Assembly (NCBI GenBank): GCA_038496445.1
Contig: JALMLS010000474.1
Location: 62,001-126,000, forward strand
Length of the DNA: 64,000 bases
From: Trichosphaerium sp. ATCC 40318
Lineage: Eukaryota > Protista > Tubulinea
Direction of reading: 5' to 3'
A program made the translations under genes and the position numbers. This document shows positions 5,418 to 64,000 of the stretch, one piece after another (position 1 is the first letter of the stretch; each line of letters opens with the position of its first letter). Under the pieces are notes generated by a model. It did no database searches. It saw nothing but the letters and a program-made list of their open reading frames with translations, and was not told where the DNA came from.

Positions 5418-7283
5418 ATGGCAGAGCCTAAATCTACAGAGGTTAATTTACAGTATGTTAATCGTTTGGCGGTGAGTAGCGACCATTCGATGGTAATAGC
5501 AGACGACGGCTTTATTTACACGTGGGGAAGTAATTACTATCGCCAATTAGGTAACACCGATGATTACACGAATTCTATCGCTAGACCGATAAAATCACTC
5601 ATAAATATCGTCTGTATTGCTGCTGGATGTAATTATAGCCTCGCAGTTGATGTAAACGGTATTGTTTATTCATGGGGTCGCAACGAAGATGGCGAGTTGG
5701 GTCTTGGTCATTTCAATTCGCCTATTTCAGAACCAACACGTGTTCCAACAGGTGTTCTAATACATAGTATCACTCAAGTAAGTGCGTACTATACGAGTAT
5801 GGCATTATCGGAATCTGGTCAGATGTACACTTGGGGAAACAATGTTCGTCATGGACTTGGTCATTCATTCGACAAGAAGAAAGTACACACGCCTCAATGT
5901 GTTACAATTTGTCGTGATGCAATCGCCAAAGTACATACGAGTGGGTGTATAAGTGGAGCAGTAACGACAAAAGGTCACGTGTATCTTTGGGGAACAACGC
6001 ACAGCAAAGCGTATGACAAGGCGTTATGCTTGAAACCAAAGACAATTTCACGTATTCCAAACATTTCAGATGCCACTGATATCGCCATCGGCGAATATCA
6101 CGTGCTTATTCTTCTCAAGTCAGGTCTTGTATATTCAATTGGATTCAATGGTTATGGCTGTCTTGGGCTAGATGTTGATGGTACATACGGACAAGGTGTT
6201 GTCGATGGACTCAGAGATGTTGTGTCCATACATGCTGGTTTCTGGTCATCTTTTGCCATTGATCGACAAGGCCATTTGTTTGTTTGGGGCAAAGGTGAAT
6301 GGGTTGATGAATTCTCATCTAGCAAACCATTACAATTGACTGGAAAATATCTCGAGTTTGCCAGCAAACGATATCATTCACTGGCGATACTTGATAAATA
6401 TACACTTTGTACAGGTGGATCAAATAAGCATGGAGAATCATCAAAACAAGAATTGACTTTCAAGAACCACAGCAAGGCACGTTTTCTATCAATATTTTCT
6501 GTGTATTGACACGTATTGACAATGTATCTAGATACTCCAAACTCAATCTAGTGGTAATCCATCAACACATCAAGCGAATAAACCAGATAAATTCTCAATC
6601 AAAGTGCATCCATCTGAGGAGCTTTTCAAATCAAGAGATGTTGTTCGAGATGTGCCTAAGAAGTTTGGACATAATCAACTAGATCTTGACATCCTTGAAA
6701 ATGCACGTGAGCTTATTCATGGCAAACAAAGAACACAACTCCAAAGAATTATCGAAAAAGTACACCTCTTCATGTCATTTTTCTTTTTTATTTACCTCAA
6801 TGTTAAGGACGCTTCTATCAATTCAACTGAAGACAAGTCATCCTTTGATGTTGTCAAAGGCGATTCATCCATCAATAGGCCTTTCAAACCCTCCGTTGGT
6901 GTAGATGACCTTGTATCACAACAGTCCTGGAAGGATAAGCGTGAATCGATTAGTGGTGTATCTATGCCAGTTGTACCGCATACAGTAGACGTTGGCAAAG
7001 TACGACTCTTTCTCAGGGTTGATTCATCTGACTTTTATTGTAGCCTTCGCCATCAGCTCCAGTTGTACCTAAAGCAGTAACACAACCATTGAGAGGAAAA
7101 GTGGAATGGGTGAGTATCTTGATATTGGCAGGGATTGATAAATCAAGAGCTCCTAAGCTTGGATCAATGTTGAATGAAACGTGTGTTGAGATCCAAGAGA
7201 TAACAGGAGAACTTATGAAAGTGTTTGAGTTTACAGTAGTAGAACGTGGGAAAGTTATCAAGTATAAAAATGACAATTGTTAA
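5418..7283 (+). CDS. RCC1 beta-propeller + KFG-motif region + C-terminal SAM-like domain (family copy A)
   Basis: Exon 1 has RCC1 repeats (YTWGSNYYRQLG, YSWGRNEDGELGLG, IAIGEYHVL). A phase-0 intron (~6477-6531) follows, then KVHPSEELFKSRDVVRDVPKKFG..LDILENA, and a terminal VEWVSILILAGIDKSRA..ELMKVFEFTVVERGKVIKYK. Confidence 0.85.
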
Positions 7284-8044
7284 ATCAATAATAAATAGTA
7301 CTCCACGTTTTGTTTCTTAGTCTCAGTACTGATTCACTGCATGTTGACTGTAACTCAACAAGATTTCACTATATGCGTCATTTTAAGTACATGGGTAGTG
7401 AATAGGTGTTGGTCTGAAAGCTATTTTCTTCTGTTCTTTGAACTTTCACTGGAGATCACATCCACAAAGTCACGACATTTCTCAAAGCATGTATTGTGTT
7501 GGGCTGGAGAATGCTATTAACTAAAAATCATGGATACATGATGGAGTTTCAGATAAAAGATGGCGTTTCCAACTTGTTTATAAGTCACAGCGATTACCGA
7601 TAAAAAAGGAAAATAACACCTTTTTTGGAGGAAAAGTACGAAGTTTACAAAGCCCTTTTGGGAGTATCAAATTGAAATCAAGGCACGTTTCTTGATGGCA
7701 AACATCATCACATACACATTCCTTATCTAAGGATTAACCCGGATTAGCGACAAATAAAATTATCGAAATCCCAAATTTGAGCAAGGTATTGTTTATCACT
7801 GTGGGCATGTACTTCTTGCTAACAAACCAACATATATTTAAATACTTCTAGCACCCATAGTAACAATTATGAGGGATGAAAAAGGTTTGCTTATGAGTAA
7901 CGAACTCAATTGGAATTATCGATAATTTTTTTGTCAATTCCTTACCTTAAACTGTCTCCTTAACAAACCATCAAGAGTGTGGTCGTGTATCGAATATTCA
8001 CGCTTACGAATAGTCGTTGAATCTACTGGCCTTGTATATACATC

Positions 8045-8425
8045 AGATTTCTCCGGAAGCCCAAATATGTAGAATTTTGTCAAAAAAAAGTCAAAAATTC
8101 GGCACTATTTATCCTATATTATGCCATAGGAACTATTTAACAAGCCCCTTTTATGGTAAGGGGACTAGAGGGTTTTTTAACACCATGGTTTTCAATCACT
8201 TGGCACTCGAGGTGCCGTAATACTTTGATTGCTGACCAATATCCCTTGAGTGTGTCCCTATGATTACACACTGATCACTGAATTTGGTAAGGATCAGGGT
8301 TATTTATTTAGTACAAAGTTAAGGCATTCAGGGGGTTTGGGGGCAGAGCCTAGCGGCGACTGAGCGCCATAACCCAGTTGTCTCCCTTTGTGGCGAACAG
8401 TTCAATATCACTTCGACATTGTTCG
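8045..8425. repeat. Dispersed repeat; inverted homolog lies inside the TIR element at ~25950-26160
   Basis: CCTATATTATGCCATAGGAACTATTTA and GGGGCAGAGCCTAGC..CCCAGTTGTCTCCCTTTGTGGC..CAGTTCAATATCAC match the reverse complement of ~26060-26150 and ~25950-26045. The copy here has an extra internal block of roughly 170 bp. Confidence 0.8.
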
Positions 8426-8594
8426 ACTTTTTTGTCGACATTTTAGTATAACCCATTTCTCCTTACCTTACAAATCGTCTAGAAGTTGTAGCTATACTTC
8501 ACGACAGTGTGCTGTTGATAAGCTCTTGTATGAAATTTGGAATGTTCCAACTAATTGGGAAGTACTTCGGACTTATATAGTCACAATTTGTGCG

Positions 8595-10599: not shown

Positions 10600-11708
10600 T
10601 TAGCATGCATTGCCGTTTGCTTCAATTACAGACACGGCAAGATTGTTGTCTGCATTATCCCAACTGCATCCTATAACAGCTCTTTCGGTGCCTGCTGCCC
10701 ATGTTTGGTAAAATGTAATCTAAAAGTAAACGTAAGTCAACATGGTATAGTTAGAAATTGTTTACAATTTTAGTGCCAGATTCTGTAGTACTTCCATCAA
10801 CTACTGCCCCAGTAGAAGACCAACAATTTGTAGCAGCAGCTCCTATAGGTGACACTTGTCGTAAGCGAACTGAAGTGATAAGAGCTCCAGAAGATGGTGA
10901 AGTAAGTTTAATATGCACATTCATTGTTGATCCGTGGTCTAAGTGTTGTTCTATTAGATTGTGCAACACTGAAAGAAAACAACTTACTAGCTATTGATAC
11001 ATCAGATACAGTAGGGCAAAACGATGATTGAGCCTGTGGTGCGTTGGTTGGAGGAGGAGTGAAAGAAGGCGGTGGTGGAGGTACTGATCCAGTGAATGTC
11101 GCTAGTGCGGGTCCTGTGTAGAAGAAAGGAGCGTTTGGTTCGTATACTTTTCTGTATTGACCTGCATCTAGAGGAAGATGTCCAGGGATTGTAACAACAG
11201 GTGTCCAAGATACAGGGCCACTATTGCCGTTTGTAATGACTATATCGGCACATTGAAGATAGTATTCGACATTAACGACTTGTTGAAGTGAATACCATTC
11301 CCATCGAAGCACAGCTTGACCATTAGGCACCCAAGAAGGAATAGTTAAGTCCCAGCTTCCGATAAGATTGCAATCGCGGATTTGATCTATCTTTGCCCAT
11401 GTTGCTTCGTTATCGAAAGAAAGATAGAAGAAGCAGTCTCCAGGATGTGCGGCTGCGAATGCCCACGTGACTGTATACGTTTGTCCGGCGTTGTAAGTAG
11501 CAGTGGTGGCTACAAAAGGAAGGTTTCGACATTTGTGAGCTGAGGTGTATTGCCCGTTTTGAAGTTGAACTGGTGCGTCTTGTTGGTAAATCGGTCTGTT
11601 TGCTTGTTGATCACGTGTTTGAGGAGAAGTGAGTCTGCCATGACTTGAAACAACTGTGAAAAACGAAAAGAGTATGCAAAGAAGAAATACTGATGTGACA
11701 ACGTTCAT
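10600..11708 (-). CDS. Lytic polysaccharide monooxygenase (His-brace LPMO) with Pro/Thr linker and C-terminal Cys-bracketed CBM-like domain
   Basis: Signal peptide ending VVSS, then His1 (HGRLTSP); second His in AAHPGDC; LRWEWY and EYYLQCADI motifs. Two 3' introns add a domain running SFCP...NCWSS...QTWAAG...GCSW...NGNAC*. Confidence 0.85.
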
Positions 11709-12302
11709 TTTTAGGTTTGGTTCGTTGCTGAGGTGTTGCTTTAGCGGTTGTAAGATTTGTTTTATGAGGTTTGTTTGACGTGCATCAGTACACATTTATC
11801 TACCCATATTTGGGTACCAAGACTATACGCTCTAGACTGCTTTATTGTTTAGAAATTGTAGTTTTGGCATAAGATAACATGGTTCCTTCTTTGTCGCGAA
11901 TGTGTGTTTTTCCAGGGTTCTAGAGTCACCTTATGGCTTTGAAGACGGTATTAATATCCCGCTAGTTACAATGTCACGCTTTATTTAGGAAGGGTCACGT
12001 TTTTTTTGGTATTTTCGAGATAGGACTAAGCCCACCTTGTTTATAATAAAGCCTCGTGTCCTTTTTTCTCGCAGTCTTTTAGTTAAAACTGCGCACACAA
12101 ATGTGTGAACCGGTGTCATGAAACTAAGAATTTGTTTTCATCGGCTGTTATAACCCGAAATAGAGCCCGAAAGGCTTGTTTATTGCCAACAGTAAAGCGT
12201 ATACTTAGAAAGCAAGAAGATCTCAGAAACTTGGTTCCAGCTTAAAACCTGGAAACAACGTCCTCCCAGTACCACTTACAACGCCTCTTTGGTACAAAAA
12301 AA

Positions 12303-14246: not shown

Positions 14247-14286
14247 TTATTACCTTGAGCTTTGAAAACAAAACCGTATTAAGATT

Positions 14287-18613: not shown

Positions 18614-20089
18614 TTACATACGCGCTTTGGTTTCCATCCCTTCTTTAGTACCATTGAGTGCTTTGATACATTCTTTAGATATTGAAGTGTGATAAAGGTA
18701 AATAGTACGAGCTCCAGCAAGTACTTTAACACCTTCGTCAGTTACTGAAGTGTTACTAAGGTCAATATAATGGATTCCAGCAAGTGCTTTAACGCCTTTA
18801 TCAGTTACTGAAGTGTTACTAAGGCGAATAGTACGGACTCCAGCAAGTGCTTTAACGCCTTCATCAGTTACTGAAGTGCCATTAAGGGTAATAGAATGGA
18901 CTCCAGCAAGTGCTTTAACGCCTTCATCAGTTACTTTAGTGTCACTGAGGTCAATAGTATGGACTCCAGCAAGCGCTATAACACCCTTATCTGTCACATT
19001 CTCACATTGGGATATGTAAATTTTGTGAACACCTTTCAGTGCTCGAATACCTTCGTCAGTTACTGAACTCTTATCGAGGTGAATAGTATGGACTCCAGCA
19101 AGTGCTTTAACGCCTGTATCAGTTACTGAAGTATTGTGACTAAGGTAAACAGTATGAGCTCCAGCAAGCGCTATAACACCCTTATCTGTCACATTCTCAC
19201 ATTGGGATATGTAAATTTTGTGAACACCTTTCAGTGCTCGAATACCTTCATCAGTTACTGAACTCTTATCGAGGTGAATAGTATGGACTCCAGCAAGTGC
19301 TTTAACGCCTTCATCAGTTACTTTAGTGTTACTAAGGTCAATAGTATGGGTGCCAGCAAGTGCTTTAACGCCTTTGTCAGTTACTGAGGTGTTACTAAGG
19401 TCAATATCATGTGCTCCAGCAAGTACTTTAACACCTTCGTCAGTTACTGAAGTATTGTAAAGGTAAATAGTATGGGTGCCAGCAAGTGCTTTAATACCTT
19501 CATCAGTTACTTTAGTGTTACTAAGGTCAATAGTATGGGTGCCAGTAAGTGCTTTAACGCCTTTGTCAGTTACTGAGGTGTGACTAAGGTCAATATCATG
19601 TGCTCCAGCAAGTGCTTTAACACCTTCGTCAGTTACTAAGGTGCCAGCAAGGTGAATAGTATGGACTCCAGCAAGTGCTTTAACGCCTTTATCTGTTACT
19701 TCATTGTTACTTAGGTCAATAGTATGGACTCCAGCAAGTGCTACAACGCCTTCATCAGTTACGTAAGAACGATAAAGCTCAATAGTATGAACTCCTGCAA
19801 ACTGCTTGACAATGCTGTTATCAACACGCCATCCAAGGCAGATTCTTGTGTATTTCAGAATACCAACATGTTTTACAGCTGATTTTGCTTGAGTTAACGT
19901 TTTTATCATAATAGCATGGTATCCAATAATGTCATGAACAATAGAAGCAAGTAAACGACAGGTTTGACAAGCCGCAAAGCGTGATTTTGTTGTTTGACGC
20001 AAGATGTGTGCTAATATCTCTGGCGGTAGGTGTAGCAAACTTGTGCCGGTCGTACTGTTAATTATAGAACCCTTTGAGGTAGAAAGCAT
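18614..20089 (-). CDS. F-box + about 18 tandem 22-23 aa leucine-rich repeats, intronless
   Basis: LLHLPPEILAHIL (F-box). Repeat unit GxHxIxLxxxxVTDxGVKALA. A block HLDKSS...YISQCEN is present twice. Confidence 0.9.
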   Translation of the reverse strand: MLSTSKGSIINSTTGTSLLHLPPEILAHILRQTTKSRFAACQTCRLLASIVHDIIGYHAIMIKTLTQAKSAVKHVGILKYTRICLGWRVDNSIVKQFAGVHTIELYRSYVTDEGVVALAGVHTIDLSNNEVTDKGVKALAGVHTIHLAGTLVTDEGVKALAGAHDIDLSHTSVTDKGVKALTGTHTIDLSNTKVTDEGIKALAGTHTIYLYNTSVTDEGVKVLAGAHDIDLSNTSVTDKGVKALAGTHTIDLSNTKVTDEGVKALAGVHTIHLDKSSVTDEGIRALKGVHKIYISQCENVTDKGVIALAGAHTVYLSHNTSVTDTGVKALAGVHTIHLDKSSVTDEGIRALKGVHKIYISQCENVTDKGVIALAGVHTIDLSDTKVTDEGVKALAGVHSITLNGTSVTDEGVKALAGVRTIRLSNTSVTDKGVKALAGIHYIDLSNTSVTDEGVKVLAGARTIYLYHTSISKECIKALNGTKEGMETKARM

Positions 20090-20362
20090 AATATCAACGT
20101 CTTTGTTTAATGTGGAAGCCTAACAATTTAACACGTGTTTTATCGATGACCTAAAGTAGAGGTCTTACTTTTCGCTTTTGATAACTGGCTAAGTCGCATA
20201 AAACTGTTTAAGGCGATAGTCACTCAAGCTTAAAGGACCTGAAAACGTTTACTATATTAATAACACCATTTAGCACGTGATCCAGCGCCAACAACTTATA
20301 CTACTACTTCCCAAAAAATAAGACAGCAATTTCAAGGCAAGTCTTTTGTTAGCGCACGTGTG

Positions 20363-20620
20363 TCATGACATTAGATGATAAATGCTTTTGGCTGTAATAT
20401 TTCTACAACCATGTAGATAAATGTTATGAACACCACCAAGTGATTCGATAGCCTCACCTGTGATACCATTCCAATGACTTAGATCAATAGTATGGCATTG
20501 TGAAAGCACTTTGACATTCTCATCTGTAACACCAGTAAACTTTGCAAGGTTAATAGAATAGACACTAGCAAGTGATTTGATATCGCTGTAACATTGTCAC
20601 ATGAATAAGATCAATTGTGT
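20363..20620 (-). pseudogene. 3' fragment of another, divergent LRR gene
   Basis: Minus-strand translation DIKSLASVYSINLAKFTGVTDENVKVLSQCHTIDLSHWNGITGEAIESLGGVHNIYLHGCRNITAKSIYHLMS*. No 5' part. Confidence 0.7.
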
Positions 20621-20735: not shown

Positions 20736-20751
20736 TAGTTCTTGGTTGGAT

Positions 20752-20820: not shown

Positions 20821-21908
20821 TCAACGTGCTTACATTCCCATCAAATTTATTCTCTGTTCAAACATGAAATGGTTGTTAGTACTGTTATAAATGGTAGCAA
20901 GTACTATCTTTGTAATCGAAAAGAATGTGTTGTTTTTTGTATTTTTGGTTGTTCAGGCTGAGTTCAGCTTGGATTTTGACTCATTTTTCTACAGGTTGTA
21001 GTTAGTTTTCATGGCCAGCGACAACAAACAAAGCCTTAATTTAATAGCCAGCATGTTACCTTTCAAGAAAATCATTTACTTTAACTATAACAGTATGTTT
21101 GATGTACACATACTTAAATTGGTTGTAATGGACAACGATGTTGTTGGGGAAAGTACGTAGCCCTTACCCTTTTCTCATCTTTTTAACTTAACCCTTGTTG
21201 ATATTTGCATCTCATAACTAATCTTTGAAGTGAAATTAACCTTCTACATTGCTTTGTAAACAGAGCAATATTGCAGTTTTTAAAACATGATTTTTCCTTT
21301 TCCTTTTTGCTAATTTCGGGCATTCTTTTTGGATAGTAGTTGCTCTAAAAGGATTGAATACATACTAAATTAAATGATTAGGTTTTATGTTGATTTAAAA
21401 GAGTTTATTGTGGAGTAAACATCCAGACTAGGAACTCGAAAATGTTAAAAGTGGTTGTATCCATTTAATGTTGAGTTTGATCCTCTGGAAGACTCCTTTT
21501 TTACTTTCTCACAGTACAGGCATGATAATTATGTTAATAATAAAGAAAAACAAAGAACCGCTTTACCGACTCATGTTTGTATCTAGCTCGCTAGATAGTG
21601 TTCTTGCATGATTGTAAAGCTACCTGTATCCGATGGTTTACTATTTGGTTACGAATATTCGTCACGTGACACTGTACTTTTTCTAACCTTCCTTTGTGGT
21701 AGAGTTACAGATGTCACAACGCATCTGTAAACATGGGAAGGTTGGAACAGGAAAGATATAAACTAAAACTATTCAAACCAGTCTCGGGAACTGGCTAGAT
21801 TTTTACGTGGTTGAATGGCGCTAACAATATGCGAGCCGAGTCCGTCGAGCAAACTTCGTTGACCATTTTGTAGCTTCTACTTTCAGTATTACAAACATTA
21901 CACGTTTT

Positions 21909-22265
21909 ATGGCGGAGCCACAAACTTCATCGGTTAATTTACAATATGTTAACCGTTTGGCCACTGGTTACAACCATTCAATGGTAATCGCAGACGATGG
22001 CTTTGTTTACACAAGTTGGCATGAGAATGGAAACCTGGAAAGGCAGTGTTACTACATAGGCGGTTGCCTTGAAGGAGAAGATAGGAGATGGCACAGTAAT
22101 GGTAATTTATGGACGCGTGATCATTACGTGAATGATGAAAAAGAAGGCAAGAGCAAGGCTTGGTATAAGAATGGGCAGTTACATTACCTTGAAAACTATG
22201 TTAATGGTAGAAGGATTACAACAGAGTTAGAAAAAGAAAGGCACATTAAGGAAACAATAAAATAG
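21909..22265 (+). CDS. Chimeric ORF: first 35 codons of the RCC1 family fused in frame to MORN-variant repeats
   Basis: MAEPQTSSVNLQYVNRLATGYNHSMVIADDGFVYT is near-identical to the starts at 36651 and 60318. It continues SWHENGNLERQCYYIGGCLEGEDRRWHSNG..WYKNGQLHYLENYVNG. Confidence 0.8.
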   Translation: MAEPQTSSVNLQYVNRLATGYNHSMVIADDGFVYTSWHENGNLERQCYYIGGCLEGEDRRWHSNGNLWTRDHYVNDEKEGKSKAWYKNGQLHYLENYVNGRRITTELEKERHIKETIK

Positions 22266-26796: not shown

Positions 26797-27410
26797 TGAG
26801 CCGCATGGTAGTAATTCTATACGTAGTGTCCCAGCAGCGTTTGGAGTAAGTATAATGCTTTTTCCTTCTAGGAGGACGTTGTAAGGTTCGCTTTTAGCCA
26901 TTTTCGAATTGGGAAAAAAAGAGAGATCTTTTTTTTTTTTTTGACAATAAAACAGCCATAGCTAAAGATGATATAAAAGAAGACAAAGACAAGTACTTAT
27001 CAAAAGCTGTGATTGATACCAATCGTGATTACACCAAGTTTGGAGATGCTTCTGAGCATCTTGATATGATTCAAGATGCCTTTGAAGCCTTTAAAATACA
27101 CCAAAATCAAGAAGAATACATAAATGAAATCATGTTTATTTAGTCAAATTTCCATCCACCTCAAGAGAATCAATCAATTGGTACCGCCATGTTTGATTGG
27201 AAGTCAACATTGATGAGGTTGGGTATTTCATTTGCAAGAGCACAGGAACTTGGATCATTAATGGATGAAGCAGGTATTGAACGTGATGGCACCTCAGATG
27301 TGCTAAAAGAGCTTGATTTCAGTCCAATTGAGCGTATCAAGTCATCAAAGCAAAACGCAAGAATGCTCTATAATATCTGCACCACAAAGGATAAGAACTC
27401 ACCAATGTAA
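26797..27410 (+). pseudogene. KFG-motif + SAM-like tail without RCC1 propeller (family copy F), internally deleted and frameshifted
   Basis: DKYLSKAVIDTNRDYTKFGDASEHLDMIQDAFEAFK and FDWKSTLMRLGISFARAQELGSLMDEAGI..LKELDFSPIERIK closely match 63308-63900. The middle exon is missing and there is a frameshift near 27340. Confidence 0.75.
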
Positions 27411-28371: not shown

Positions 28372-28680
28372 ATGACAATTTCTACAGCTTGGATTTTAGT
28401 AGCGGTAGTACTCCCTATCATCGCAGAGCCTCTACAAATGCATTTCTTTTCAGATGAATTGGTGACACCAGGAGGAATGGCTGCTACATCGTACATAACA
28501 TTGTAACCGTCACACTCATTTTCTTAAGGTTTGTATAGATACGCTTGGCCCGCAAATGAAACCGGATATGACAACATCAATTACCTCGTTAACGTACAGC
28601 ACGATCCTGGGAAAGGTTCTGGTACGCAAAGATACCAACATACCGCCTTGTACTAATAACGTTAAACTTAGCTTATTTTT
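28372..28680 (+). pseudogene. 5' fragment of a secreted-protein gene, apparently truncated
   Basis: MTISTAWILVAVVLPIIAEPLQ signal peptide, an intron, then YAWPANETGYDNINYLVNVQHDPGKGS and a second donor (GTACGC). The sequence then runs into the antisense LRR copy. Confidence 0.5.
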
Positions 28681-28684
28681 GGGC

Positions 28685-29322
28685 CAGCCACTAAGGTGAA
28701 TAGTATGGACTCCAGCAAGTGCTTTAACGCCTTCATCAGTTACGGAAGTGTTACTAAGGTCAATAGTATGGACTCCAGCAAGCGCTTTAACACCTTCATC
28801 AGTTACTTTAGTGTCACTAACGTCAATAGTATGGGCGCCAGCAAGTGCTTTAACACCTTCATCAGTTACTAAAGTGTCATTGAGGGTAATAGAATGGACT
28901 CCAGCAAGTGCTTTAACGCCTTCATCAGTTACTTTAGTGTAGCTGAGGTGAATAGTATGGACTCCAGCAAGTGCTTTAACACCTTCATCAGTTACTTCAG
29001 AACGATCAAGCTCAATAGTATGAACTCCTGCAAACTGCTTGACAATGCTGTTATCAACACGCCATCCAAGGCAGATTCTTGTGTATTTCAGAATACCAAC
29101 ATGTTTTACAGCTGATTTTGCTTGAGTTAACGTTTTTATCATAATAGCATGGTATCCAATAATATCATGAACAATAGAAGCAAGTAAACGACAGGTTTGA
29201 CAAGCCGCAAAGCGTGATTTTGTTGTTTGACGCAAGATGTGTGCTAATATCTCTGGCGGTAGGTGTAGCAAACTTGTGCCGGTCGTACTGTTAATTATAG
29301 AACCCTTTGAGGTAGAAAGCAT
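28685..29322 (-). pseudogene. 3'-truncated F-box-LRR paralog (about 5.5 repeats)
   Basis: The first ~105 aa are identical to 18614-20089. Repeats stop abruptly at HTIHLSG and the ORF runs on into unrelated sequence to 28516. Confidence 0.8.
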
Positions 29323-29693
29323 AATATCAACGTCTTTGTTTAATGTGGAAGCCTAACAATTTAACACGTGTTTTATCGATGACCTAAAGTAGAGGTCTTA
29401 CTTTTCGCTTTTGATAACTGGCTAAGTCGCATAAAACTGTTTAAGGCGATAGTCACTCTAGCTTAAAGGACCTGAAAACGTTTATTATATTAATAACACC
29501 ATTTAGCACGTGCTCCAAACACCAAAACTTATACTACTACTTCCCAAAAAATAAGACGGCAATTTCAAGGCAAATCTTTTGTTAACGCACGTGTGTCATG
29601 ACATTAGATGATAAATGCTTTCGGCTGTAATATTTCTACAACCATGTAGATAAATGTTATGAACACCACCAAGTGATTCGACAGCCTCACCTG
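29010..29693. repeat. Near-identical segmental duplicate of ~19770-20460
   Basis: Covers the F-box 5' region, the promoter and the tail of the upstream LRR fragment. Few mismatches by eye; ends at GCCTCACCTG. Confidence 0.9.
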
Positions 29694-29698
29694 CGACC

Positions 29699-43196: not shown

Positions 43197-45853
43197 ATGG
43201 CCAGTTCACAGCTCCCTCTTGTTGCTATATTTGCCTGCTTTATAGTTGCTACAAGCGCTTTTTCAACCTTTTTTTTGAGTGCATGTCCGGCAAGAGGTGA
43301 TTTATGTGCCGGGATGTGTTCGAACGCGTACGTATTAGTTTTTTGAGAGAAAATTTTTTCCATCTTACGTAATGACAGGGCAGACAATACACTACCTGTA
43401 AACGTTGAATCTGATGTATTTACAACCGGTTACGAACCAGGAGAAACGTATGACATTACAATAGATATAGGAAGTGGTGAAAGCTGGAGAGTACGCTAAA
43501 ACTATACACGTGATCATCTTTTTGGGACAAATAGTTTTGGTATTGTTTTTTTTGATTTCGTACATCAAAAAATCACGTGGATAAGATATTTGGATAGTAA
43601 TGTCTTTAGGGATTTGTAATGTCCTTTTTCGACTCCGGAAACGTCGAAAGAGGTACTTTTAGTACCTCTGACACTAAATTTGATGCATCTTCTGCAAACA
43701 TGTTATGTACACAAGGTATAAGGCACGCAGACGCTACCCCTGTTAGCGACACAAGGACTATTCAATGGACAGCCCCTGCTAGTGTTTCAGGCGATCTAAC
43801 TGCCCAAGTACGTCTATAGTATATGATAGTACACGATATATAGCGTTAGCCTATGGTTTAATAGGTTGGCCGAAAGATACGGCCAAACCGGGCTTCTTGT
43901 GATTTTTTTTATGACGCTCTATGCTTATTCTGTTCGCTCTATTAGGCTTGGGTTGTTCTTAATCGTGCAGGAGCAGCAGGGTGCAGGTGGTTGGATCTTA
44001 GTAATACAGTATCGGTATTACAGCAAACAGAAGCGCCAACAGACGCACCAACTGATGCTCCAACTGATGCACCAACAGACGCTCCAACTGACGCTCCAAC
44101 TGATGCACCAACAGATGCTCCAACTGACGCACCAACTGATGCACCAACAGACGCTCCAACTGACGCTCCAACAGACGCTCCAACTGACGCACCAACTGAC
44201 GCACCAACAGACGCACCAACTGATGCTCCAACAGACGCACCAACTGACGCTCCAACTGATGCTCCAACAGACGCTCCAACAGACGCTCCAACAGATGCTC
44301 CAACAGATGCTCCAACAGACGCTCCAACAGACGCTCCAACAGATGCACCAACTGATGCTCCAACAGACGCTCCAACAGACGCTCCAACAGATGCTCCAAC
44401 AGATGCTCCAACTGAGGCTCCAACAGACGCACCAACTGATGCTCCAACAGACTCTCCTACTGAAGCTCCTGTAGCACCAACGACTGAAGCACCAGTACCT
44501 ATTTTGGTTAGTGTTGGTGACTTTGTGTTCAATGATCGCGATATGACTGGTGTTCAAGGAAAGTACAAAAAAAAACCTTCGGAATGAATTTGTTACATTG
44601 TTTTACCATTCTGTTAACATTTTTTACTTAGGCATCAACTTCCCTTTCAATGATGACATGATTCCAGTAATTCTATTAAGTGCAGATGGATCACAAATTA
44701 TTTCACAGACCACTACAAATAACCGTGGTGTCTATGAGTTTAATACACCAGACAATAACCTACAGCCAGAAACTGACTACATAATTTGTGTTGACTTTAT
44801 GACAATGACAGAAACAGTTATTTTATCTCCACCTTTTGCTAGTGGTAACCCAGCAACTGATTCAAACGGTCAATTAGCTACATATCCTGTATACAGCTCT
44901 ACGGTACGAGAACCATCCTGAAAAACGTGCCCTTAAACAGAATTTTTTTCTTCAACTTCTCGCTTAAACACGGAAGTGCTTAAACGTATCTAAGTTACTA
45001 CACCGCAGATATCTACATTATAATTTGATATTTCTTCTTTAAATTCATTTATTAACTGCCTTCCTAGCCATTATCCTGCGCAAACATAACATCTCCGCAA
45101 AATGGAAGAAATGATGTGACGGTTGATTTTGGTTTAATAAGAGTAGCAGAACCTACAACAGACGCACCAACCAATCCTCCTACTGAAGCACCACCAACAG
45201 ATGCTCCAACAGCAGTACCTCCTACAGAAGAACCGGCAACAGATGCTCCTACAGAAGCACCACCAACAGATGCTCCAACAGATACGCCAGCACCTACAGA
45301 TGCTCCAACAGATGCTCCAGCTGCAGCGCCTATTGACATTCCTCCAACTATGATACCAACTGCAGTACCTTCAGCTCCGCCTACGGATGTTCCTACAACT
45401 GCTCCTTCTATGGCTCCTGTTACAAACGCTCCTCCATCGACAGATGCTCCAATAGCACCTACATCAGAACCTACACCACCACTTGATTCTGACGAGTACG
45501 ATTAGACTTTCTTTTTTTCTTCCGCCTGAAATTGAGCTGTTTCTGATCTCCTTGGTTTAGAGTTGGACCTAAAGTACAAGGAACTGGTTCTGCATTACAA
45601 TTTGGCAGTGGTTTCCAAGACGCTATTAACCAAGCGTACAATAGCGCTGTGGAAGATTGCACTGAGTAAGTGAAAAGAAACGAATGTCGCACGTGCGTAA
45701 CTTATTTTTTATTTTAGATGTTGTGAAGCATTAGATTTCTCGAGTGCTGTACCTTCAAGTTGTATTTTAGAAGGAGGTTGTAAATACCGTTTTTGTGTAG
45801 GAAAATTGACACGACGTGTCACAGCAACATGCACGTGTACCTGCGCGTTATAA
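43197..45853 (+). CDS. Secreted Reeler domain + TDAP mucin-like repeat + SdrD B-like domain + PT-rich linker + Cys-rich C-terminus
   Basis: Signal MASSQLPLVAIFACFIVATSA. Reeler motifs YEPGETYDITI..WRGFVM..GTF..C.QGIRH..IQWTAP. SVGDFVFNDRD..GVQ..TTTNNRGVYEF..TDSNG..DVTVDFGL matches an SdrD-B-like domain. Ends TCTCTCAL*. Confidence 0.75.
44027..44469 (+). repeat. 12-bp coding minisatellite encoding (TDAP)n, about 36 units
   Basis: ACW GAY GCW CCA tandem units, with variation mostly at synonymous positions. Confidence 0.95.
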
Positions 45854-48189: not shown

Positions 48190-49849
48190 CTACGTTATAT
48201 TGTTAACAGAGGCAGTCTTGAAGCTGGAGCTATTTCTTTTAAAGGTTTTTGACTTAGGAGGCAGAAAACTCAATGATTGCGTGATAGACAATCCGTTGAA
48301 CATTGTCACAAGTTCAATGAAAAAAATGCTATGTGCTATTGGATTCGATTGCCAGATAGGCCAAAGTATCCAAGATATGGCGAGTCTCGCCATATTAAGC
48401 ATAAAGAATAGACTGAGTGCAACACGAATGAATAATCTTCTGACTGATCCTTTCGATCGGTCCATTGCAGATTCCGATCTTCTTAGTCTTTGCCATAGTT
48501 TATACACTATTATTACAAGATACGCCATCACAATTCCGTTTACACATGTGTGGAAACCAGCGGATATAATGAACGAATAAGATGGAAACGGAAACAAAAA
48601 GATGCGTAATGCATTCATTGTTGTTTCAAAGAGTATGACTACGAGTGATATGACATAGAACGGAACAGCTAATTTCTTGATATATGGTGTTACATCAAGG
48701 CTCATAGATATCATTGACTCGTGCCAATATAAAGCAATCAAAAGCTTTGACAAGGTTCCGCCAATAGTGTGAAACGTTTGTCCCACTTCATCATACCTAA
48801 ACGGATGAAAAATCAGCAACAACTCGCCACTTAAAAACGATTAGTTTTTACCATCCTGGAAGAAGGAAGAGGTATCCATTTGGCTCTGGAATACACCATG
48901 CTAATCTGAAAGCACATGATACTACTTCAATAAGTAGCGCCACCTTTGGTATTGATAAACTGAAGCCTTCCACACTTACGAACTGATAGCTCCTTGAGGG
49001 CGTAGTTAGGCGATAAGTCCCTATTAAAAACATTGTACCTATACAATGCGATAGATAGTGCAATGCCCGATAGCAGCGCAACATAAACATGTCTCACTTA
49101 CAACAATTTAGATTGTAACTACAGTTATTGAGAGAATTTGCTCACCTATAGACCAAGAGCTAGCGTAAACAGTGTACCAACTGTTTTCTGAATGAATAAA
49201 GGTTACTGTAGTATTCTCTTCAATGTGAGATACATGGCGCTGTCCAATCACAACAACTCTTAGGTTACTTAAGTCATCTAAGCATAATAGATAAGTAAAA
49301 AGAAGAATGAAAATCGGAAAATACTAAGTCTAAGTCGATAAATCACGTGGTTCTATATTTAAACAATCCCGAAAAAGTACGCACTTATTTTGATAAAGTT
49401 ACCACGACCAACACGTAAATCATCGCTGGCTTCATAATATTCTACTATACCAACTACTCCTTGCTTCTCCCATTGCAAATAATTCTTACGGTCGTCTGGG
49501 TATTTGGCAAGTACTGCTTTTCCTACACGTGGAGTTTGTAATTGTAATCGAAAGTCCGAAATTGCTTGATACGATATAGAGCGCTGTTATTACCTTCTAA
49601 ATTTACTCCTTCGCCTGGTACAACGAGCGATGCATTAAAAGAGTTAAATTCTGTTTTCGCTCCTCTTCGAAATACATATGTAACGCCAGGGTACTCTATT
49701 GTGGTTCCTAATATCGCTATTAAACAAGTTGTTGTCATATGACGTTTTGAAAAAAAACCAAAAGTTAGAAACAAACCATTTTGAGTTATCACTATGTTTC
49801 CTAGTACAATACTAACTATTGTAACCAAAGTTATCAAGCCGTTACGCAT
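48190..49849 (-). CDS. Signal peptide + PA-like extracellular domain + 7TM (GPCR-like) receptor, tandem copy 1
   Basis: MRNGLITLVTIVSIVLG; FNASLVV..GKAVL..QGVVGIV (PA-like); then multiple TM helices (LLIEVVSCAFRLAWC, LLIALYWHE, VRRLFIRVALSLF). Confidence 0.65.
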
Positions 49850-49994
49850 GTTGATGTGTATTAGAGTAGTAACAACAAAAATAACGTAATGTTAAGTCAT
49901 TTCAATCGTAATATCTTTTTTTCTTGGAGTTCGGTTTCATCTTGATTGATAGTTACTGGTATATTAAACTGTTTTATTAAAGGTTTTTTGTTCT

Positions 49995-51654
49995 TTAGGT
50001 TGTACTATTAACTGTACTATTAACAGATCCAGTTTTGAAACTGTAACTATTTGACTTAGTAGATGTTGGCTTCGGAGGTAGAAAACTCAATGATTGCGTG
50101 ATGGACAATCCATTAAACATCACCATGAATTCAATGTAATAAATACTATGTGCTATAGGGTTCGATTGCCAGATAGGCCAAAATATCCAGAACATAGCAA
50201 GCTTTGCTATGTTCGCCATAAAGAATAGACTGAATGCAACACGAAGGAATAATCTTCTGACTGATCCTTTCGATCCTCCAATAGCTGCTCCTGATCTTCT
50301 TAACCTTTGCCACAGTTTAAGCGCTATTACTGTTAGGTACACCATCACAGTTCCGTTCACTGCTGCATGGAAAGCAGCAGATATGTAGAATGAATAAGGA
50401 GGAATAGGGAACAATACAATGCGTAGAATGTTCAATATTGTTTCAAAGAGTACCAATACTAGCGATGTGACGTAGAACGGAATAGCTAATTTCTTGACAA
50501 AAGGAGTGACGTTGAGGCTCATGGATATCATTGACTCGTGCCAGTATAAAACAATCAAGAGATTAGATATATTCGCTCCGATAGTGTGAAACGTTCTTCC
50601 TACCTCATCGTACCTAAATACAAAGAGAATTTCAGCACCTAAAGTCACAAAATACAAAAACGTTTAGTACCATCCTGGAAGAAGGAAGAGGTATCCGTTT
50701 GGTTCTGGAATACACCACGCCAATCTGAAAGCACATGATACTATTTCAATGAGTAGCGCCACCTTTGGTATTGATAGACTAAAGCCCTCTATACTTACGA
50801 ACTGATAGTACCTTGGACAAGATTAGTTACTATCAAAACACATTGTGACTTAGAACGAACCTGTAGCATGCTATAAATAGCGCAATACCTGTAATAAATG
50901 CTACAAAAATATGTCTTGCTAAGAACGTATTAGAGGATTAGCTAAGAAGCAACCTAGAAGTTGTATACCTATAGACCAGAAGCTCTCGTAAACAGTATAC
51001 CAACGGTTCTCTGAATGAATAAATGTGACTGTAGTATTCTCTTCAATATGGGATACATGGCGCTGTCCAATCACAACAACACGTAAATCACTCAAGTCAT
51101 CTAAGGATATTTGATAAGTAAAAGAAAAGTTTTTGAAAACAATGCGAGAACTCGTGGAATTTCGAGAAAAAGAAGGGGGTGACTTACTTATTTTGATAAA
51201 ATTACCACCACCAACACGTAAGTCATCGCTGGCTTCATAATATTCTACTATACCAACTACTCCTTGCTTCTCCCATTGTAAATATTTCTTACGGTCATCT
51301 GGGTATTTGGCAAGTACTGCTTTTCCTACACGTGGAGTTTGTAATTGTATTTGAAAGTCCGAAATTGATTGATAAATTAAGCTAACCTTCTAAATTTACT
51401 CCTTCGCCTGGTACAACGAGCGATGCATTAAAAGAGTTAAATTCTGTTTTCGCTCCTCTTCGGAATACATATGTAACGCCAGGGTACTCTACTGTGGTCC
51501 CTGATATCGCAATTAAACAATAATGACGTTTTTGACGAAAAAACCAAAACACCGGCCTTGTAAAAAGGGTTAGAAACATACCATTTTGAGTTATCAGTAT
51601 ATTCCCTATTACAACGCTAATTATTATAGCCAAAAATATCAAGCTGGTGCGCAT
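49995..51654 (-). CDS. PA-like + 7TM receptor, tandem copy 2
   Basis: Same exon structure as 48190-49849. The extracellular part is nearly identical and the TM part more diverged. Confidence 0.65.
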
Positions 51655-52245
51655 GTTGCAGTGTATAAAATGAAGGTTAAGTCGCTTTCTCTTTGAGTGG
51701 TTTAAATACACCTCTAAGTGGTATTAATTGACATGAAAGGACATTAATATGAAAATATCCACCTTCCTCTTTGCAGTAAAATCTATCACTCCGGATCTTT
51801 CTTTCTTCAATTACTACTAGTATCTCTTGATAAATTTTATAGGCTCTACAATTGTTTGCTTGTTTTTAGCTCCAGATAAGACGGAATTCTGTGAACGCGA
51901 CTGTAACAAAAAGTGAGCTCCAAACAAATTTTCCCAACATGTACAGTGACAATAAAAAAACCGCACGTGCCTTTCATAGCTACGTCCACCTTTTGTCATG
52001 AATGTAATCTTACCAGCATAGTACATTAAATCTAGACTAAATGCTGTTGGCATCAATATTGTTGACTGCCTTGACACTCTTGTTTGGCATCAAATTCTTA
52101 TGCATTGCATTTTTCTACGGCCGATTTATAAGCGAACTTTATTCGCCACTTGTAAATGACAGAAAAAAAAGTCAAACGAAAAATCAGTTCTGCGTTCTCA
52201 TTAGGACAACATAACTGTGCATACGTTTATCTTTAGCCAAAGAAA

Positions 52246-58275: not shown

Positions 58276-60318
58276 TTAACAATGGTCTTTTTTATACTTG
58301 ATAACTTTTGCACGCTCAATTGCTGTAAAATCAAACACTTTCATTATTTCTCCTTTTAACTCTTGTATCTCAATACATGCTTCATCCAACATTGATCCAA
58401 GTGTTTGAGCTCTTGATCTCTCAATCCCTGCCAATATCAAGATATTCACCCATTCAACTTTCCCTCTCAACGGTTGTTCTGGTACAACTGGAGCTGATGC
58501 TGAAGGCTGCAATAAAAGTTAGGTGATGTATCGCTCCTGAGAGAAAGAGTCGTACTTTGCCAATGTCTACTGTTTCAGGTACAACTGGTATTGATACATC
58601 TCTCTTATCCATATTAATAGATTCAATCCTGTTCTTCCAGGACTGTTGCGAAACAAGGTCATCTACATCAACGGAGGGTTGAGAAGGGTTCTTTATGGAT
58701 GAATCGCCATTGAAGTGCGAAGAGGTAGACTTGGCTCCAATTGAATCGGAAGAAGCATCCTTAACATTGACGTAAATAAATATGTGTTAAATGAAATATC
58801 TTGGTTGTACGTTGCCAAGGTTGATCGTTTCAAACTTATCTTGAAGCCATGATTGTCTTGATACAAGATCATCAGCATCGATTAAAGGTGGATGTTGATT
58901 TGATTCATTGGTGGGTGGATTGTAGTTGATTGAATCAATAGAGGCTTCTTGTCCTTAAAGTATAAAAGAGTTACAAAACATAAGAATAGTGGAATGAGCA
59001 CTTACTTTGCTGTTTGGATTGAATGAGATGACGAGCATTTTCGAGAATCTGAAGATCTTGTTCTGTTTGTCCAAATTTCTGAGGTACATCTCGAATGCCC
59101 TTTTTTGACGTGAACATCTCTTCGGATGGATGTACTTTGATCGATGACTTGTTGATTGGCTGTTCATCCAATTGTTGAGTGTCGATTGTATCTTTGTTTG
59201 TTTGCTAATGACTTGTCAAATAGACAGAAAGATGAATGAGATTACAAAGTACCTTTTGGTGATTGTTGAATGTCAACTTTTGTGGTGTTGATTGACCATA
59301 ATCATTATTTCCACCTGTGACCAACTGAAAGTCATGAGATATTGCCAAGTAATGAAATTGTTTATTGGCAAACTCAAGATATTTTCCAGGTAATTTTAAT
59401 GGTTTGTTTGATTTGAACGAATCAATCCATTTCCCTTGACCCCAACCAAACAAACAACCTTCATCATCAATCGCAAATGATGTATAGTAACCAGCATGTA
59501 CAGATTTGATGTTATTGAGTCCTTTGATGATACCCTGGCCATACTCGTCATCAATACCCAACCCAAGACACCCATTGTAGTTGTATCCAAAAGAAAATAC
59601 TTGTCCTGACTTGAGGAGAACAAGTACATGACAATAACCAATGGCAATATCAGTGGCATCATCAATACTTGGAACACGTGAAATTGTCTTTGGATTCAAG
59701 AATAATGATTTATCTCTTGCTTCATCTTTTGTTGTTTCCCAGAAATTTAGTTGTTCCCCAAAGAAAGACATGACCTGTTGACGTCATTGCTCCACTTACA
59801 TACGAGTTATTTTGAATTTTTTGAACATTTTGAAGATTTGGAATAACCGCTGGTGATGAAACTTTCGAATTGTCGAATGAATGACCCAATCCTTGATATG
59901 AGTTGTCTCCCCAAGAGTAGACATGACCTGATTTTGATAACGCCATACTCACTTCATAGGCAGAGACTTTCGTGATATTGTTGAGATTTGGAACACGTGT
60001 TGGTGACGAAACAGGTGACGCAAAGTGACCCAGACCCAATTCACCATCTGAATTACAGCCCCATGCATACACAATACCGTTTGAATCAACTGCAAGGCTA
60101 TGATTCCATCCAGCAGCAATACAGACGATATTTATGACTGATTTTATTGGTCTTGCGATAGAACTCTTTCTTTCGTCTGTGTTACCCAATTGGTGGTGAT
60201 TGTTTTGTCCCCACGTGTAAACAAAGCCATCGTCTGCGATTACCATTGAATGGTTTAAACCAGTGGCCAAACGGTTAACATATTGTAAATTACCCGACGA
60301 AGATTGCGGCTCTGCCAT
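58276..60318 (-). CDS. RCC1 + KFG-motif + SAM-like domain (copy D); +1 frameshift near 59730 (pseudogene or sequencing error)
   Basis: ORFs 59722-60318 and 59205-59771 join if one base is removed from an A-run. Tail KVHPSEEMFTSKKGIRDVPQKFG and VEWVNILILAGIERSRA match copy A. Confidence 0.8.
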
Positions 60319-61620: not shown

Positions 61621-61806
61621 AAGCCATTTTCCATGCTTTTTCAACTCTTTATTGTACCTTGTGCTCATTGCAGTACGCTTTGGAAGCAGTGGATAGCATA
61701 GGTACACTGATACTGATGCGTCTAAATCTATAATATCGAGCTGAATCTTGGGTGGGAAGTGTAATAGGTGACAAGTATCTCGTTTTACTGCGATAGTATG
61801 AAGCAT
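61620..61806 (-). pseudogene. 5' fragment of an F-box-MORN gene
   Basis: HLLHFPPKIQLDIIDLD..KRTAMSTRYNKELKKHGKW aligns with HLFDLPVELHLDIIDLD..KHTATTTTFDSDLNKHGKW at 13441-13590. It stops where the MORN repeats should begin. Confidence 0.7.
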
Positions 61807-63307
61807 CCTAAATAAAGTACAATAAATTACTTCGGATAGTAGAAAATGAAAATATCAGCATAAGTCACTTGATATCACGTGACGTATGTATGGGATATCA
61901 AGTGTAAGCGATACTGTAGTGCTGGGGTTTTTGGAGAAATAGCGTAATTAACGGAGCACTACGATGTTGAGAAAACTGTAAACTACTAAAAATGAAAAAA
62001 TGAAAAAAAATTGAAGTCAATAGCAATAGTTGTTTATTGGTGATATTGTATGGCGCAATGTTTACAAATAGAGTTGGTCGTGGTCCAGTACCAACTAAGC
62101 CAGCTATAAAAATCTGTAGCTGGTTAACTGACGGCTAAGAAACTCAGCAACAAAATCTGAAATCAGCTAAACCGTTTAAAAATGTGTGATTTTGTTGATG
62201 TTGTACCATGGCACCACATGCTTTTTTTACGTTTTATATGCTCTCAATGGCTTTGACTTCGTTAGTGTTTGATACATAAGTCCAAAGCCTAGTGTTTTAC
62301 CCAATATTCTCAAAGGTAAATGTGAATGTCACTGTCCCTAGTTAACATTTCTTATCACAAGTCAATTGACTGAGTGTAGAGCTTTTTACTAGGTAGTCGA
62401 TAAGTATATCTTGCATGTAAAATGCGTTTAGAACACACTGGGTAAACGTAGAGTGTACAATAATTGCACCTGATCCGAGAACTTTCTCGGCACATTTTTT
62501 GGCTTGAAAAAACTGTAAAACATACTTTCCGTGAACCACTACCACTTGTTTACTCTTGCAGGTCACTACAGTACTAAATAGGTTGTAATGGATTTAATAA
62601 ACGTATTTGAGCGCTGTGGATACGACTGACTGGAATAAACAAGAAAAGTTCTTCTTATTGTTCTTTTCTACGCGTATAATCGCGTGTACTATACTTTGGT
62701 GAGTATTTGTGTAAAGATAAGGTAGACCAGCAAGCCCTGTTTTGAAACTTTGGTACCACCCTTTCTAGATACAGAGAAATGTATTTCCGTTGCCTTAGAA
62801 ACAGGCGGTCGCGTTCTGCCATATTTTATGTTGAAATCCGTAGTTGAACCCAGGAGCTTTGTAACATAATGTAAGATACTGTATGTATAGTAAGGCACCA
62901 TTGAAAAGTGATTTTGGCTTTCAGAAACTGTTTACCATTCGAATGAAAATTATCAAAAACAAGCACATTCGTTTTTCAGTTTTTTACGAATTTACAGCCA
63001 TGTGATAGTTTTTGGTTACCAGTATGTTTGTAGTATGTTTTACATAACTATGTCTACTTGTAGCCGTAATATAAAGTTTCTAGCGTACATTTGTGAACCA
63101 CACTGACGGGTTTTTTTTAGTTTTCAATCTGCTCAGCAAAAAGTTCTCTATGTGACCCTCAATGTGTTAATATAATGTCATTGTTCTGTTCAAAACAAGC
63201 TAGTATTTATTGTAAGACATCTAAACTATTACAAAACCAATTGTTAATATTCGATTGTTTTTGGTGTATTCATCATTGAGGAGGCTTAAGATATGCGCTT
63301 CATCGAT

Positions 63308-64000
63308 TTATAGAGCATTTTTGCGCTTTGCTTTGATGACCTTGATACGTTCAATTGGATTGAATTCAAGCTCTTCTAATACATCTGAGGTGATGTCTCC
63401 AGGTTTGATACCTGATTCATTCATTAACGATCCAAGCTCTTGTGCTCTTGCACTTGAAATACCCAACCTCGACAATGTTGACTTCCAATCATATTTGGGA
63501 GTAGCGATTGATTGATTCTCTTGAGGTGGACAGAACTCCGACTAAACGAACAAAATTAAATGTGAAGAAAATAAAATTAAAACGAGACACCTTTGTGTGA
63601 GCAACTGAAACATGAGGCTTGTCATTCCATGATTGTTCAGATACAATTGAGGTGTCTACATCAAGTGGCAAGCGAGGATTGTCAACCTAAAATACCATGT
63701 GAGATAGGTATCGCTTATTTTCTGATACTTACATTGTTGATGTATTCATCTCGATTTTGGTGTATTTTAAAGGCTTCAAGGGCATCTTGAATGATATCAA
63801 GGTGTTCAGGATCATCTCCAAACTTGGTGTAATCACGATTGGGCTCAACCACAGCTTTTGACAAGTACTTATCTTTTCGGTCTTCTTTTAACTCTGCATT
63901 CATTGCTTTCACAGCATCATTGTTTTTATCTTTTGCGATTACTTTATTGGCTGGTTTAAAGTGCTTGTAGATTGTGAGATAAAAAGAAAGACAAATAAGA
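63308..64000 (-). CDS. 3' part of KFG-motif + SAM-like family gene (copy E); 5' end outside the window
   Basis: DKYLSKAVVEPNRDYTKFGDDPEHLDIIQDALEAFK; QSWN in the middle exon; terminal YDWKSTLSRLGISSARAQELGSLMNESGI..LEELEFNPIERIKVIKAKRKNAL*. Confidence 0.8.

Follow-up and report, generated by a model that had tools for sequence, protein, structure and literature searches.

Propeller and tail are statistically unlinked in a clustered family of RCC1-like genes from Trichosphaerium

Do the two ends of a gene share one history? The question is raised by four genes in a 64,000-nucleotide stretch of DNA from Trichosphaerium sp. ATCC 40318 (contig JALMLS010000474.1, positions 62,001 to 126,000), here called the window. 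The DNA is eukaryotic, with a G+C content of ~37% and short introns of the GT-AG type. Each of the genes, named A, B, C, and D, encodes an RCC1-like propeller in exon 1 and a tail in the exons that follow. A first-pass annotation proposed that recombination, or gene conversion, at or near the phase-0 intron between these parts makes new propeller-tail pairs. Gene D, said to join a B-like propeller to an A-like tail, was the example. Comparison with paralogs throughout the genome supports the making of new pairs family-wide. Conversely, neither D as an example, nor the intron as the site, survives. Most probably, a propeller tract of ~1 kb is exchanged and homogenised among copies, and old promoter and tail classes are thereby reassorted.

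Propeller and tail across the family

Four RCC1-like propeller genes in the window, A to D, exceed Pfam curated cut-offs. The families matched are PF00415, PF13540, and PF25390. With exon 1, PF25390 scores 185.4 bits for A and 231.3 bits for B (cut-off 150), and the RCC1 repeats score 113-117 bits (cut-off 21.7). The propeller has seven blades and, within one gene, these are 25-33% identical to each other. Next comes a linker of 2-3 short exons, with KFG and QSW motifs, and then a C-terminal SAM-like domain. In the 70 Mb assembly, of 642 contigs, the propeller exon is matched more than 100 times, often in tandem arrays, and the last, SAM-like, tail exon 122 times. Although exon 1 passes the cut-offs for known RCC1-like proteins, its nearest relatives outside this genome are distant; the best matches in a collection of 5.8 billion proteins are 33-35% identical and have other partner domains. 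No match from that collection has the SAM-like tail, or the hypervariable pattern described below. The family, of about 100 copies, is mostly clustered and lineage-specific.

We compared 52 paralogs: A, B, C, D, F (a gene at the window edge, locus L004), and 47 further loci of the same genome. Exon 1 is intact in 44 of them. Comparisons used partitions, and all-against-all BLAST; MAFFT alignments of whole 3.6-kb loci were too gappy in the flanks.

The final tail exon, exon 4, exists in two types. In the exon-4 tree, alpha tails (n = 15, including A, C, and D) are split from beta tails (n = 35, including B and F) with support of 100/100. At the protein level, exon 4 of B is 32-42% identical to alpha tails. 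On the exon-1 tree, tail type changes 13 times, and shuffled labels give a mean of 13.2 (2000 shuffles). These counts omit L044 and L050, where no exon 4 was found, and the framework tree omits C and L044. Monophyly of alpha genes on exon 1 is rejected by the approximately unbiased (AU) test, with a log-likelihood difference of 496 (p = 1e-93). Removal of 42 hypervariable codons, and a variable loop, leaves this outcome in place (difference 429, p = 2e-72). For 27 core paralogs, exon-1 identity is 90.7% where the tail type is the same, and 90.3% where it differs. We conclude that propeller and tail are statistically unlinked family-wide. Separate trees of exon 1 and the tail exons are incongruent by AU test and by change counts, as expected of the independent assortment first proposed.

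Silent sites give the same contrast. Synonymous divergence (dS) in exon 1 is 0.047 for D-F, 0.035 for D-L014, 0.031 for D-L007, and 0.065 for B-D. For the same four pairs, exon-4 dS is 0.95-1.9, and exon-2 dS is 4.0 (D-F) or saturated. Promoters and introns of different classes are unalignable, unlike exon 1. The likeness of exon 1 is unlikely to be a rate effect; gene A, with a dS of ~0.7 to core copies, indicates that silent sites in this exon can diverge. Together, a tract more alike than its flanks at silent sites too, an incongruent tree, and mosaic patches are hallmarks of interlocus gene conversion and concerted evolution.

The exon is far from uniform. Among its 355 codons, 42 are hypervariable, forming two patches per blade, with a diversity (pi) of 0.41 compared to 0.042 in the framework. 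Conversely, 203 of the 355 codons are invariant among 27 paralogs. The ratio of nonsynonymous divergence (dN) to dS is ~1-2 over the whole exon. In the pairwise homoplasy index (PHI) test within exon 1, the observed value was reached in 0 of 1000 permutations. Exon 1 differs more than either non-coding flank in 9 of 12 pairs of whole-gene duplicates; L033 and L007, for instance, are 96.0% identical in the promoter, 91.3% in exon 1, and 98.8% downstream. Hence, foreign patches or selected changes still enter exon 1 once a gene has been duplicated. For annotation, the consequence is that single-gene trees of this family are meaningless unless built per segment.

Where exchanged segments begin and end

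Individual recombinants locate the borders of the exchanged segments. Junction segments were aligned explicitly; note that classes differ in length by 12 nt, which distorts clustering at fixed offsets right of +48. All four pairings of two promoter classes with two tail classes exist: L027 (UP8/DOWN12), L002 (UP8/DOWN13), L003 (UP13/DOWN12), and L024 (UP13/DOWN13). Parts shared by these genes are 94-97.5% identical. Their unshared promoters are unalignable, and the tail classes are 81-82% identical over ~500 nt only. Three of the four, L027, L003, and L024, are neighbours on contig C104.

A second set of four combinations involves smaller parts. Two versions of an intron-1 block, and two exon-2 ends, are found in every pairing (F/L033, L023/L025, L007, and L021). 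The block, of ~110 nt, spans the intron with 18 nt of exon 1 before it and 17-27 nt of exon 2 after it. L007 and L033, like L021 and L023, share promoter and tail, and are otherwise 95-99% identical; the block alone differs. A difference so restricted is a signature of short-tract conversion. Tail type also switches between close relatives. The adjacent loci L012 and L014 have promoter, propeller, and intron block in common, and then an alpha or a beta tail. Similarly, F and L025 are alike to the end of exon 2, after which the exon-4 type differs.

The homogenised tract starts ~27 nt after the ATG, and the first nine codons follow the promoter class. It ends 18-30 nt before the donor of intron 1 in classes I and II, and ~80 nt before it in classes III and IV. 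Mapped junctions lie ~27 nt after the ATG, 18-30 nt upstream of the donor, ~17-27 nt into exon 2, or where exon 2 ends. Of those mapped in the 52 copies, none is inside intron 1.

We propose that the propeller tract is continually exchanged by non-allelic homologous recombination, which would combine short-tract conversion with unequal crossover in tandem arrays. Such exchange would hold the framework, silent sites included, within 3-7% across copies, and diversifying selection would maintain differences at the hypervariable codons. Promoters, exon 2, the SAM-like exon, and the end of exon 1 together with intron 1 each belong to classes that are old, and no longer mutually alignable. Since the propeller tract is the sole long homology common to all copies, exchanges would begin and end within it or at its edges. 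Bounded in this way, they would bring together new sets of 5' flank, propeller variant, and tail class. The ~110-nt intron-1 block and the exon-2 end, both smaller, would be swapped too. Note that we infer the molecular route, be it conversion or crossover. The homology tract, rather than the intron, would then set the sites of module exchange.

Intron 1 itself is conserved. About 45 of the 52 aligned copies share a phase-0 donor, AAG|GTA, at the end of exon 1, and the intron is 45-58 nt long. In the window, the first-pass annotation correctly placed this donor at a homologous position in all four genes. Exon 1 ends NHRK|GTAATC in B and NHQK|GTACTT in D. For C, it ends QQLN|GT at 37836, and RNA contigs of runs X1 and X2 skip 37787-37835, which confirms the splice. 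The public RNA runs are assembled contigs, holding 5-7% of the sampled words. In A, exon 1 ends NHSK, and a GC donor (GCACGT) and an AG acceptor at 6531 bound a putative intron of 58 nt. The frame of A is open from 6532; if intron 1 is not spliced, it ends 12 codons on. RNA contigs that track B exon 1 to 35601 run on into a spliced class I junction. Hence, class I paralogs are expressed, and spliced at the shared donor. As the intron between propeller and tail is conserved and in phase 0, every propeller exon is compatible in frame with every tail.

Some copies have dispensed with the intron. In L026 and L029, ~10 nt stand in place of intron 1, 7 nt from the end of exon 1, and ~15 nt from the start of exon 2, which leaves open reading frames (ORFs) of 451 and 419 aa that continue into exon 2. 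The intron was thus lost by in-frame genomic deletion. L031 has the same deletion, 1 nt shorter, and is thus out of frame.

Classical exon shuffling would account for these genes differently: tail cassettes would be moved by recombination in introns, and propellers would be alike following a recent burst of duplication. A symmetric-phase intron at the module border, here phase 0 and conserved, is what such shuffling predicts. The same promoter and propeller do occur with alpha or beta tails (L012 and L014, F and L025), and tail exons occur on contigs that have no RCC1 exon. However, none of the mapped junctions is in intron 1. Instead, the exon-1 end, intron, and exon-2 start move as a unit, with coding junctions on both sides. 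In addition, the intron offers just 45-58 nt, and L026 and L029 lost it with their class unchanged. A duplication burst also leaves unexplained why exon 1 is less alike than its flanks in young duplicates. We consider this explanation unlikely, although it is the best of those that compete with exchange of the propeller tract.

The genes of the window

Members of the family in the window are as follows, with positions numbered from its first letter.

5418-7283, forward strand: gene A, a divergent member with an alpha-type SAM-like tail; exon 1 5418-6473, intron 1 6474-6531, exon 2 6532-6759, exon 3 6808-6999, exon 4 7044-7283
21501-22012, forward strand: E, 5' part; promoter like that of L042 and L018, then 104 nt from the start of a propeller exon (residues 1-39)
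26898-27407, forward strand: E, 3' part; exon 2 of beta type, 95.7% identical to L018, and a SAM-like exon 4 that is degenerate, with the frame disturbed
34886-36651, reverse strand: gene B, beta-type tail, probable mosaic; exon 1 36651-35587, exon 2 35541-35350, exon 3 35301-35200, exon 4 35152-34886
35587-35616, reverse strand: putative switch point of B, near the end of exon 1 (final ~30 nt), ~28 nt from the donor
37114-39020, reverse strand: gene C, divergent alpha-type SAM-like last exon, matched by RNA contigs; exon 1a 39020-38870, extra phase-1 intron 38732-38869, exon 1b 38731-37836, intron 1 37787-37835, tail exons down to ~37114
58276-60318, reverse strand: gene D; exon 1 60318-59253, intron 1 59252-59205, tail exons to ~58276
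58279-58458, reverse strand: alpha-type exon-4 core of D
62494-64000, reverse strand: F, a gene tail; beta-type exon-4 core 63311-63493

The whole propeller had been described as one exon in each of A to D. This applies to A and B. In C, an extra 138-nt phase-1 intron lies inside blade 1; it is confirmed by an X1 RNA contig, and the other 51 copies have no intron there. In D, exon 1 is frameshifted. Gene C is expressed and spliced, with support from X1 record 4 (1106 nt, 15 mismatches), X1 record 5, and X2 record 12.

Gene A differs from the core copies in its propeller. Exon-1 dS to D, B, and F is 0.68-0.73 and, conversely, A-D exon-4 dS is 0.28. Exon 4 of A groups with those of D, L034, L020, and L029 (support 96/91). 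On these divergences, A looks like a copy whose propeller escaped homogenisation.

Gene B has exons of 355, 64, 34, and 88 codons, with KFG in exon 2 and QSW in exon 3. Exon 2 has a phase-0 intron on each side. Exon 1 is 91-93% identical to at least 7 paralogs. The tail had been matched to E and F. This is correct for the class, since all are beta type, and B and F are 70.8% identical over 171 nt, but L017, L019, and L022 are closest. Their exon 4 is 85-90% identical to that of B (protein), and that of L017 is 92% identical as DNA. Identity shifts near the end of exon 1. In 60-nt windows at +980 to +1040, B is 90-91% identical to D, L014, and L007, and 71-75% identical to L017, L019, and L022. 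From +1040, the values are 55-58% and 80-93%, respectively. Hence, B is most like core copies upstream of the switch, and most like the class III tail group (L017/L019/L022) downstream. The alignment suggests that B is probably a core-type propeller joined to the tail class of L017, L019, and L022.

The promoter of B is alignable to L044 alone (96%), a truncated copy. L044, on contig C313, is part of a second copy of the B-C pair, equivalent to window positions 35600-39000. For its B-like copy, identity in the promoter and early exon is 96-100%. This copy stops ~110 nt before the donor, and is followed by sequence with a repeated 14-nt motif, with no tail within 2 kb.

Several points weigh against exchange of the propeller tract as we read it, or limit its reach. 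When B is placed with its tail kin on the exon-1 tree, the log-likelihood difference is 52-55 and AU p values are 0.07-0.08, short of rejection at 0.05; the mosaic is therefore probable, not proven. The B junction is also unique in the sample and, because public runs are assembled contigs, is bridged by no reads. All other junctions are likewise read from assembly sequence. The 52 copies, of roughly 75-100, were picked as the best matches to the A propeller, and so are a non-random sample. All comparisons are within one genome, and bear on concerted evolution indirectly. A number of the 'paralogs' may represent haplotigs, or the same locus assembled a second time. L039 and L040 have the same sequence, contig C546 mirrors 7.8 kb of the window contig, and contig C313 mirrors the B-C gene pair. 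If these are duplicate assemblies, independent events are fewer. For most events, conversion and crossover are inseparable. As to function, we infer it wholly.

Might the assembly itself have created the pattern, by chimeric joins within a propeller exon that is 90-95% identical between copies, or by polishing across paralogs? A repeated 1-kb tandem tract is a typical site for mis-joining, some of the 642 contigs are redundant, and the B junction has neither a second copy nor a bridging read. Even so, the same combinations occur on separate contigs (D/L034/L020, L021/L023, and L012/L026). The frame is open in 44 of 52 copies of exon 1, and these have distinct hypervariable codons. Transcript contigs from independent studies are ~99% identical to C, and the class I exon end is spliced as predicted. 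Furthermore, junctions cluster at the edges of the tract, where mis-joins would be spread along it. An artefact on this scale seems improbable, and rather more so than exon shuffling.

The case for D as a single recombinant, made in or next to the phase-0 intron from a B-like propeller and an A-like tail, is weaker again. Over 1045 nt, exon 1 of B and D is indeed 92.9% identical, with at most 3 nt between the end of this similarity and the donor, and the intron and tail of D are then 70-80% identical to A. The resemblance to B is not special. B exon 1 is equally near at least 7 paralogs, and the nearest propeller to D is that of L034 (95.4%). The match between D and A tails (6787-7300 and 58780-58259; 79.8% over 531 nt) holds at class level, within the subclade supported at 96/91, and closer kin exist: L034 at 98%, L020 at 96%, and L029 at 91%. 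The reported match in the 3' flank is weak; past the stop are a 17-nt identity and a few short colinear matches (E = 0.007-0.3). The propeller of A is equidistant from core copies (dS ~0.7), so A is only a distant, unhomogenised member of the tail class.

Conversely, D is colinear throughout with two other loci. Identity to L034 is 98.0% in the promoter, 95.4% in exon 1, and 98.3% downstream. For L020, the equivalent values are 96.0%, 92.1%, and 96.3%. A 7.8-kb colinear copy of the F-D region is on contig C546. The last 18 nt of D exon 1 go with its intron class, which is common to 7 other loci. Hence, the architecture is older than D. Rather than a fresh hybrid, D is a frameshifted whole-gene copy, and its propeller-tail join is no one-off misassembly, the outcome that had been named as refuting the proposal. 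Exon 1 of D is 1066 nt long and, compared to L034, lacks 2 nt in a length-variable loop of blade 4, near 59745. A stop follows at codon 199, so D is a pseudogene as assembled. That D arose by a single recombination at the intron is thus very unlikely.

Least credible is that nothing was exchanged, and that exon 1 looks young because it is more constrained, maybe at silent sites too: constraint on the framework protein is clear from its invariant codons, but exon-1 dS is 20-50 times below tail dS in the same pairs, silent sites in A have diverged, exon-1 dN is no lower than dS, congruence is rejected in the AU test of framework codons, PHI is significant, all four combinations of parts exist, and recent duplicates are less alike in exon 1 than in non-coding flanks.

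The remaining members are partial. Upstream of E, identity to L042 and L018 is 82-86%. Positions 21909-22012 are 84-94% identical to most paralogs, and family sequence then ends. The tail of E is also beta type, and exon 2 is closest to L018. The two parts of E are a broken gene copy that lacks ~940 nt of the propeller. The propeller exon of F is just past the window end, at window-equivalent positions 64009-65058 (locus L004).

Other genes share the window. Two encode F-box and LRR_6 domains (18614-20089 and 28516-29322, reverse strand). A 1-kb 5' part is 94% identical between them (19460-20463 and 28693-29696), and the LRR arrays, of 63-nt units, differ in length. By sequence, these look like another repeat family with internal exchange. 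At 10908-11795 (reverse strand), an intronless ORF has a signal-peptide-like start, an above-cut-off match to AA9 lytic polysaccharide mono-oxygenases (E = 6.5e-13), and a proline-rich tail. A long tandem array of 12-nt units, at 43866-44590 and 45147-45340, has several open frames (for example, a T-D-A-P repeat), and a local G+C content and GC skew unlike the surroundings. Finally, 48203-49861 and 50020-51666 are a tandem duplication, 77% identical over 1.7 kb, that encodes a multi-pass hydrophobic protein (ORFs 48190-48822 and 49995-50657) with no Pfam match. Elsewhere in the genome, L051 (G000:C8:25652-27466) is an intronless cytosolic-type HSP70, present as four near-identical copies. It is 63-68% identical to the nearest animal, fungal, and plant proteins, a divergence that suggests a poorly sampled lineage.

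The tail fold and known systems

Exons were searched and modelled one by one, rather than as the joined spliced protein. Searched singly, no tail exon matches a Pfam family, and the exon-4 peptides of A and B match none of the Pfam SAM families even at E values up to 10. A profile search of PDB sequences with the tail returned chance-level matches only. Structure was more informative. AlphaFold predicts a small helical bundle for the last 61 aa of B exon 4, with a mean confidence score (pLDDT) of 96.7. The best solved match, by Foldseek, is the SAM-like domain SHD2 of Sla1 (PDB 3idw), with template modelling (TM) scores of 0.79/0.74 and a root-mean-square deviation of 2.0. More than 10 SAM domains, those of tankyrase, Shank, BICC1, ASK3, and ANKS3 among them, match at TM scores of 0.6-0.69. 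Foldseek E values are weak (best 0.024), as a consequence of the small domain size. The last tail exon is therefore best called SAM-like: the predicted bundle resembles SAM domains, and Sla1 SHD2, in fold, but differs from SAM domains in having no Pfam SAM sequence match, and homology is unproven.

Of the 122 SAM-like tail exons, 32 or more are on contigs without an RCC1 exon (C3, C500, C11, C146, and others). Hence, the tail is probably used by other genes.

What might the family do? One tentative suggestion is a germline recognition repertoire of an amoeboid protist, immune-like or for self/non-self discrimination. The homogenised RCC1 tract would serve as a recombination cassette that pairs binding faces with two long-diverged SAM-like output types, and the tail cassette would serve other sensor domains. 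If so, an RCC1 scaffold, which is not known for such a role, would carry a modular sensor/adaptor system. If the proteins are receptors, two tail types and 42 variable surface codons would provide experimental handles on a protist recognition repertoire. Whatever the function, the family shows in numbers how concerted evolution confined to one domain goes together with diversifying selection and with output modules that reassort freely, on an RCC1 propeller and in a poorly sampled eukaryotic lineage. A full-text search for RCC1 together with family expansion, diversifying selection or hypervariability, or gene conversion or concerted evolution found no paper.

The mode of evolution is known from clustered recognition families; the scaffold is unusual here. 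In the KIR, Ly49, and plant NLR clusters, unequal crossover in tandem arrays generates hybrid receptor genes, and exchange points are often intronic or intergenic. Clustered paralogs, reassorted binding parts and tails, and pseudogenes are all features in common. The differences are that exchange in our family occurs at the edges of a homogenised coding tract, and that a receptor role would be an extrapolation. Patthy's rule describes exon shuffling through phase-compatible introns. The phase-0 intron between modules is in keeping with this, but the mapped junctions are outside it.

The closest described case is the NLR-like HNWD family of Podospora anserina, which includes het-d and het-e. 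Published accounts describe a beta-propeller recognition domain whose sequence passes between and within loci by concerted evolution, with diversifying selection on a few surface positions in each blade, and with different effector parts attached (Paoletti, Saupe and Clave 2007, PMC1805685; Chevanne et al. 2010, PMC2873952). On that description, both families have a propeller that is shared by paralogs, exchanged, diversified, and joined to different effectors. Unlike the HNWD proteins so described, those of our family have no NACHT or HET domain. By Pfam, exon 1 matches RCC1 families only, the tail exons match none, and no NACHT, HET, or NB-ARC domain was found; at ~540 codons, the genes also lack room for a NACHT or NB-ARC domain. 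The variable partner is instead the C-terminal SAM-like tail. The scaffolds and hosts differ too, being a WD40 propeller in a fungus, and an RCC1 propeller in an apparently non-fungal organism. Finally, the unit of HNWD exchange is the single repeat. Here, the unit would be the whole propeller tract, with blades that are 25-33% alike and not homogenised together.

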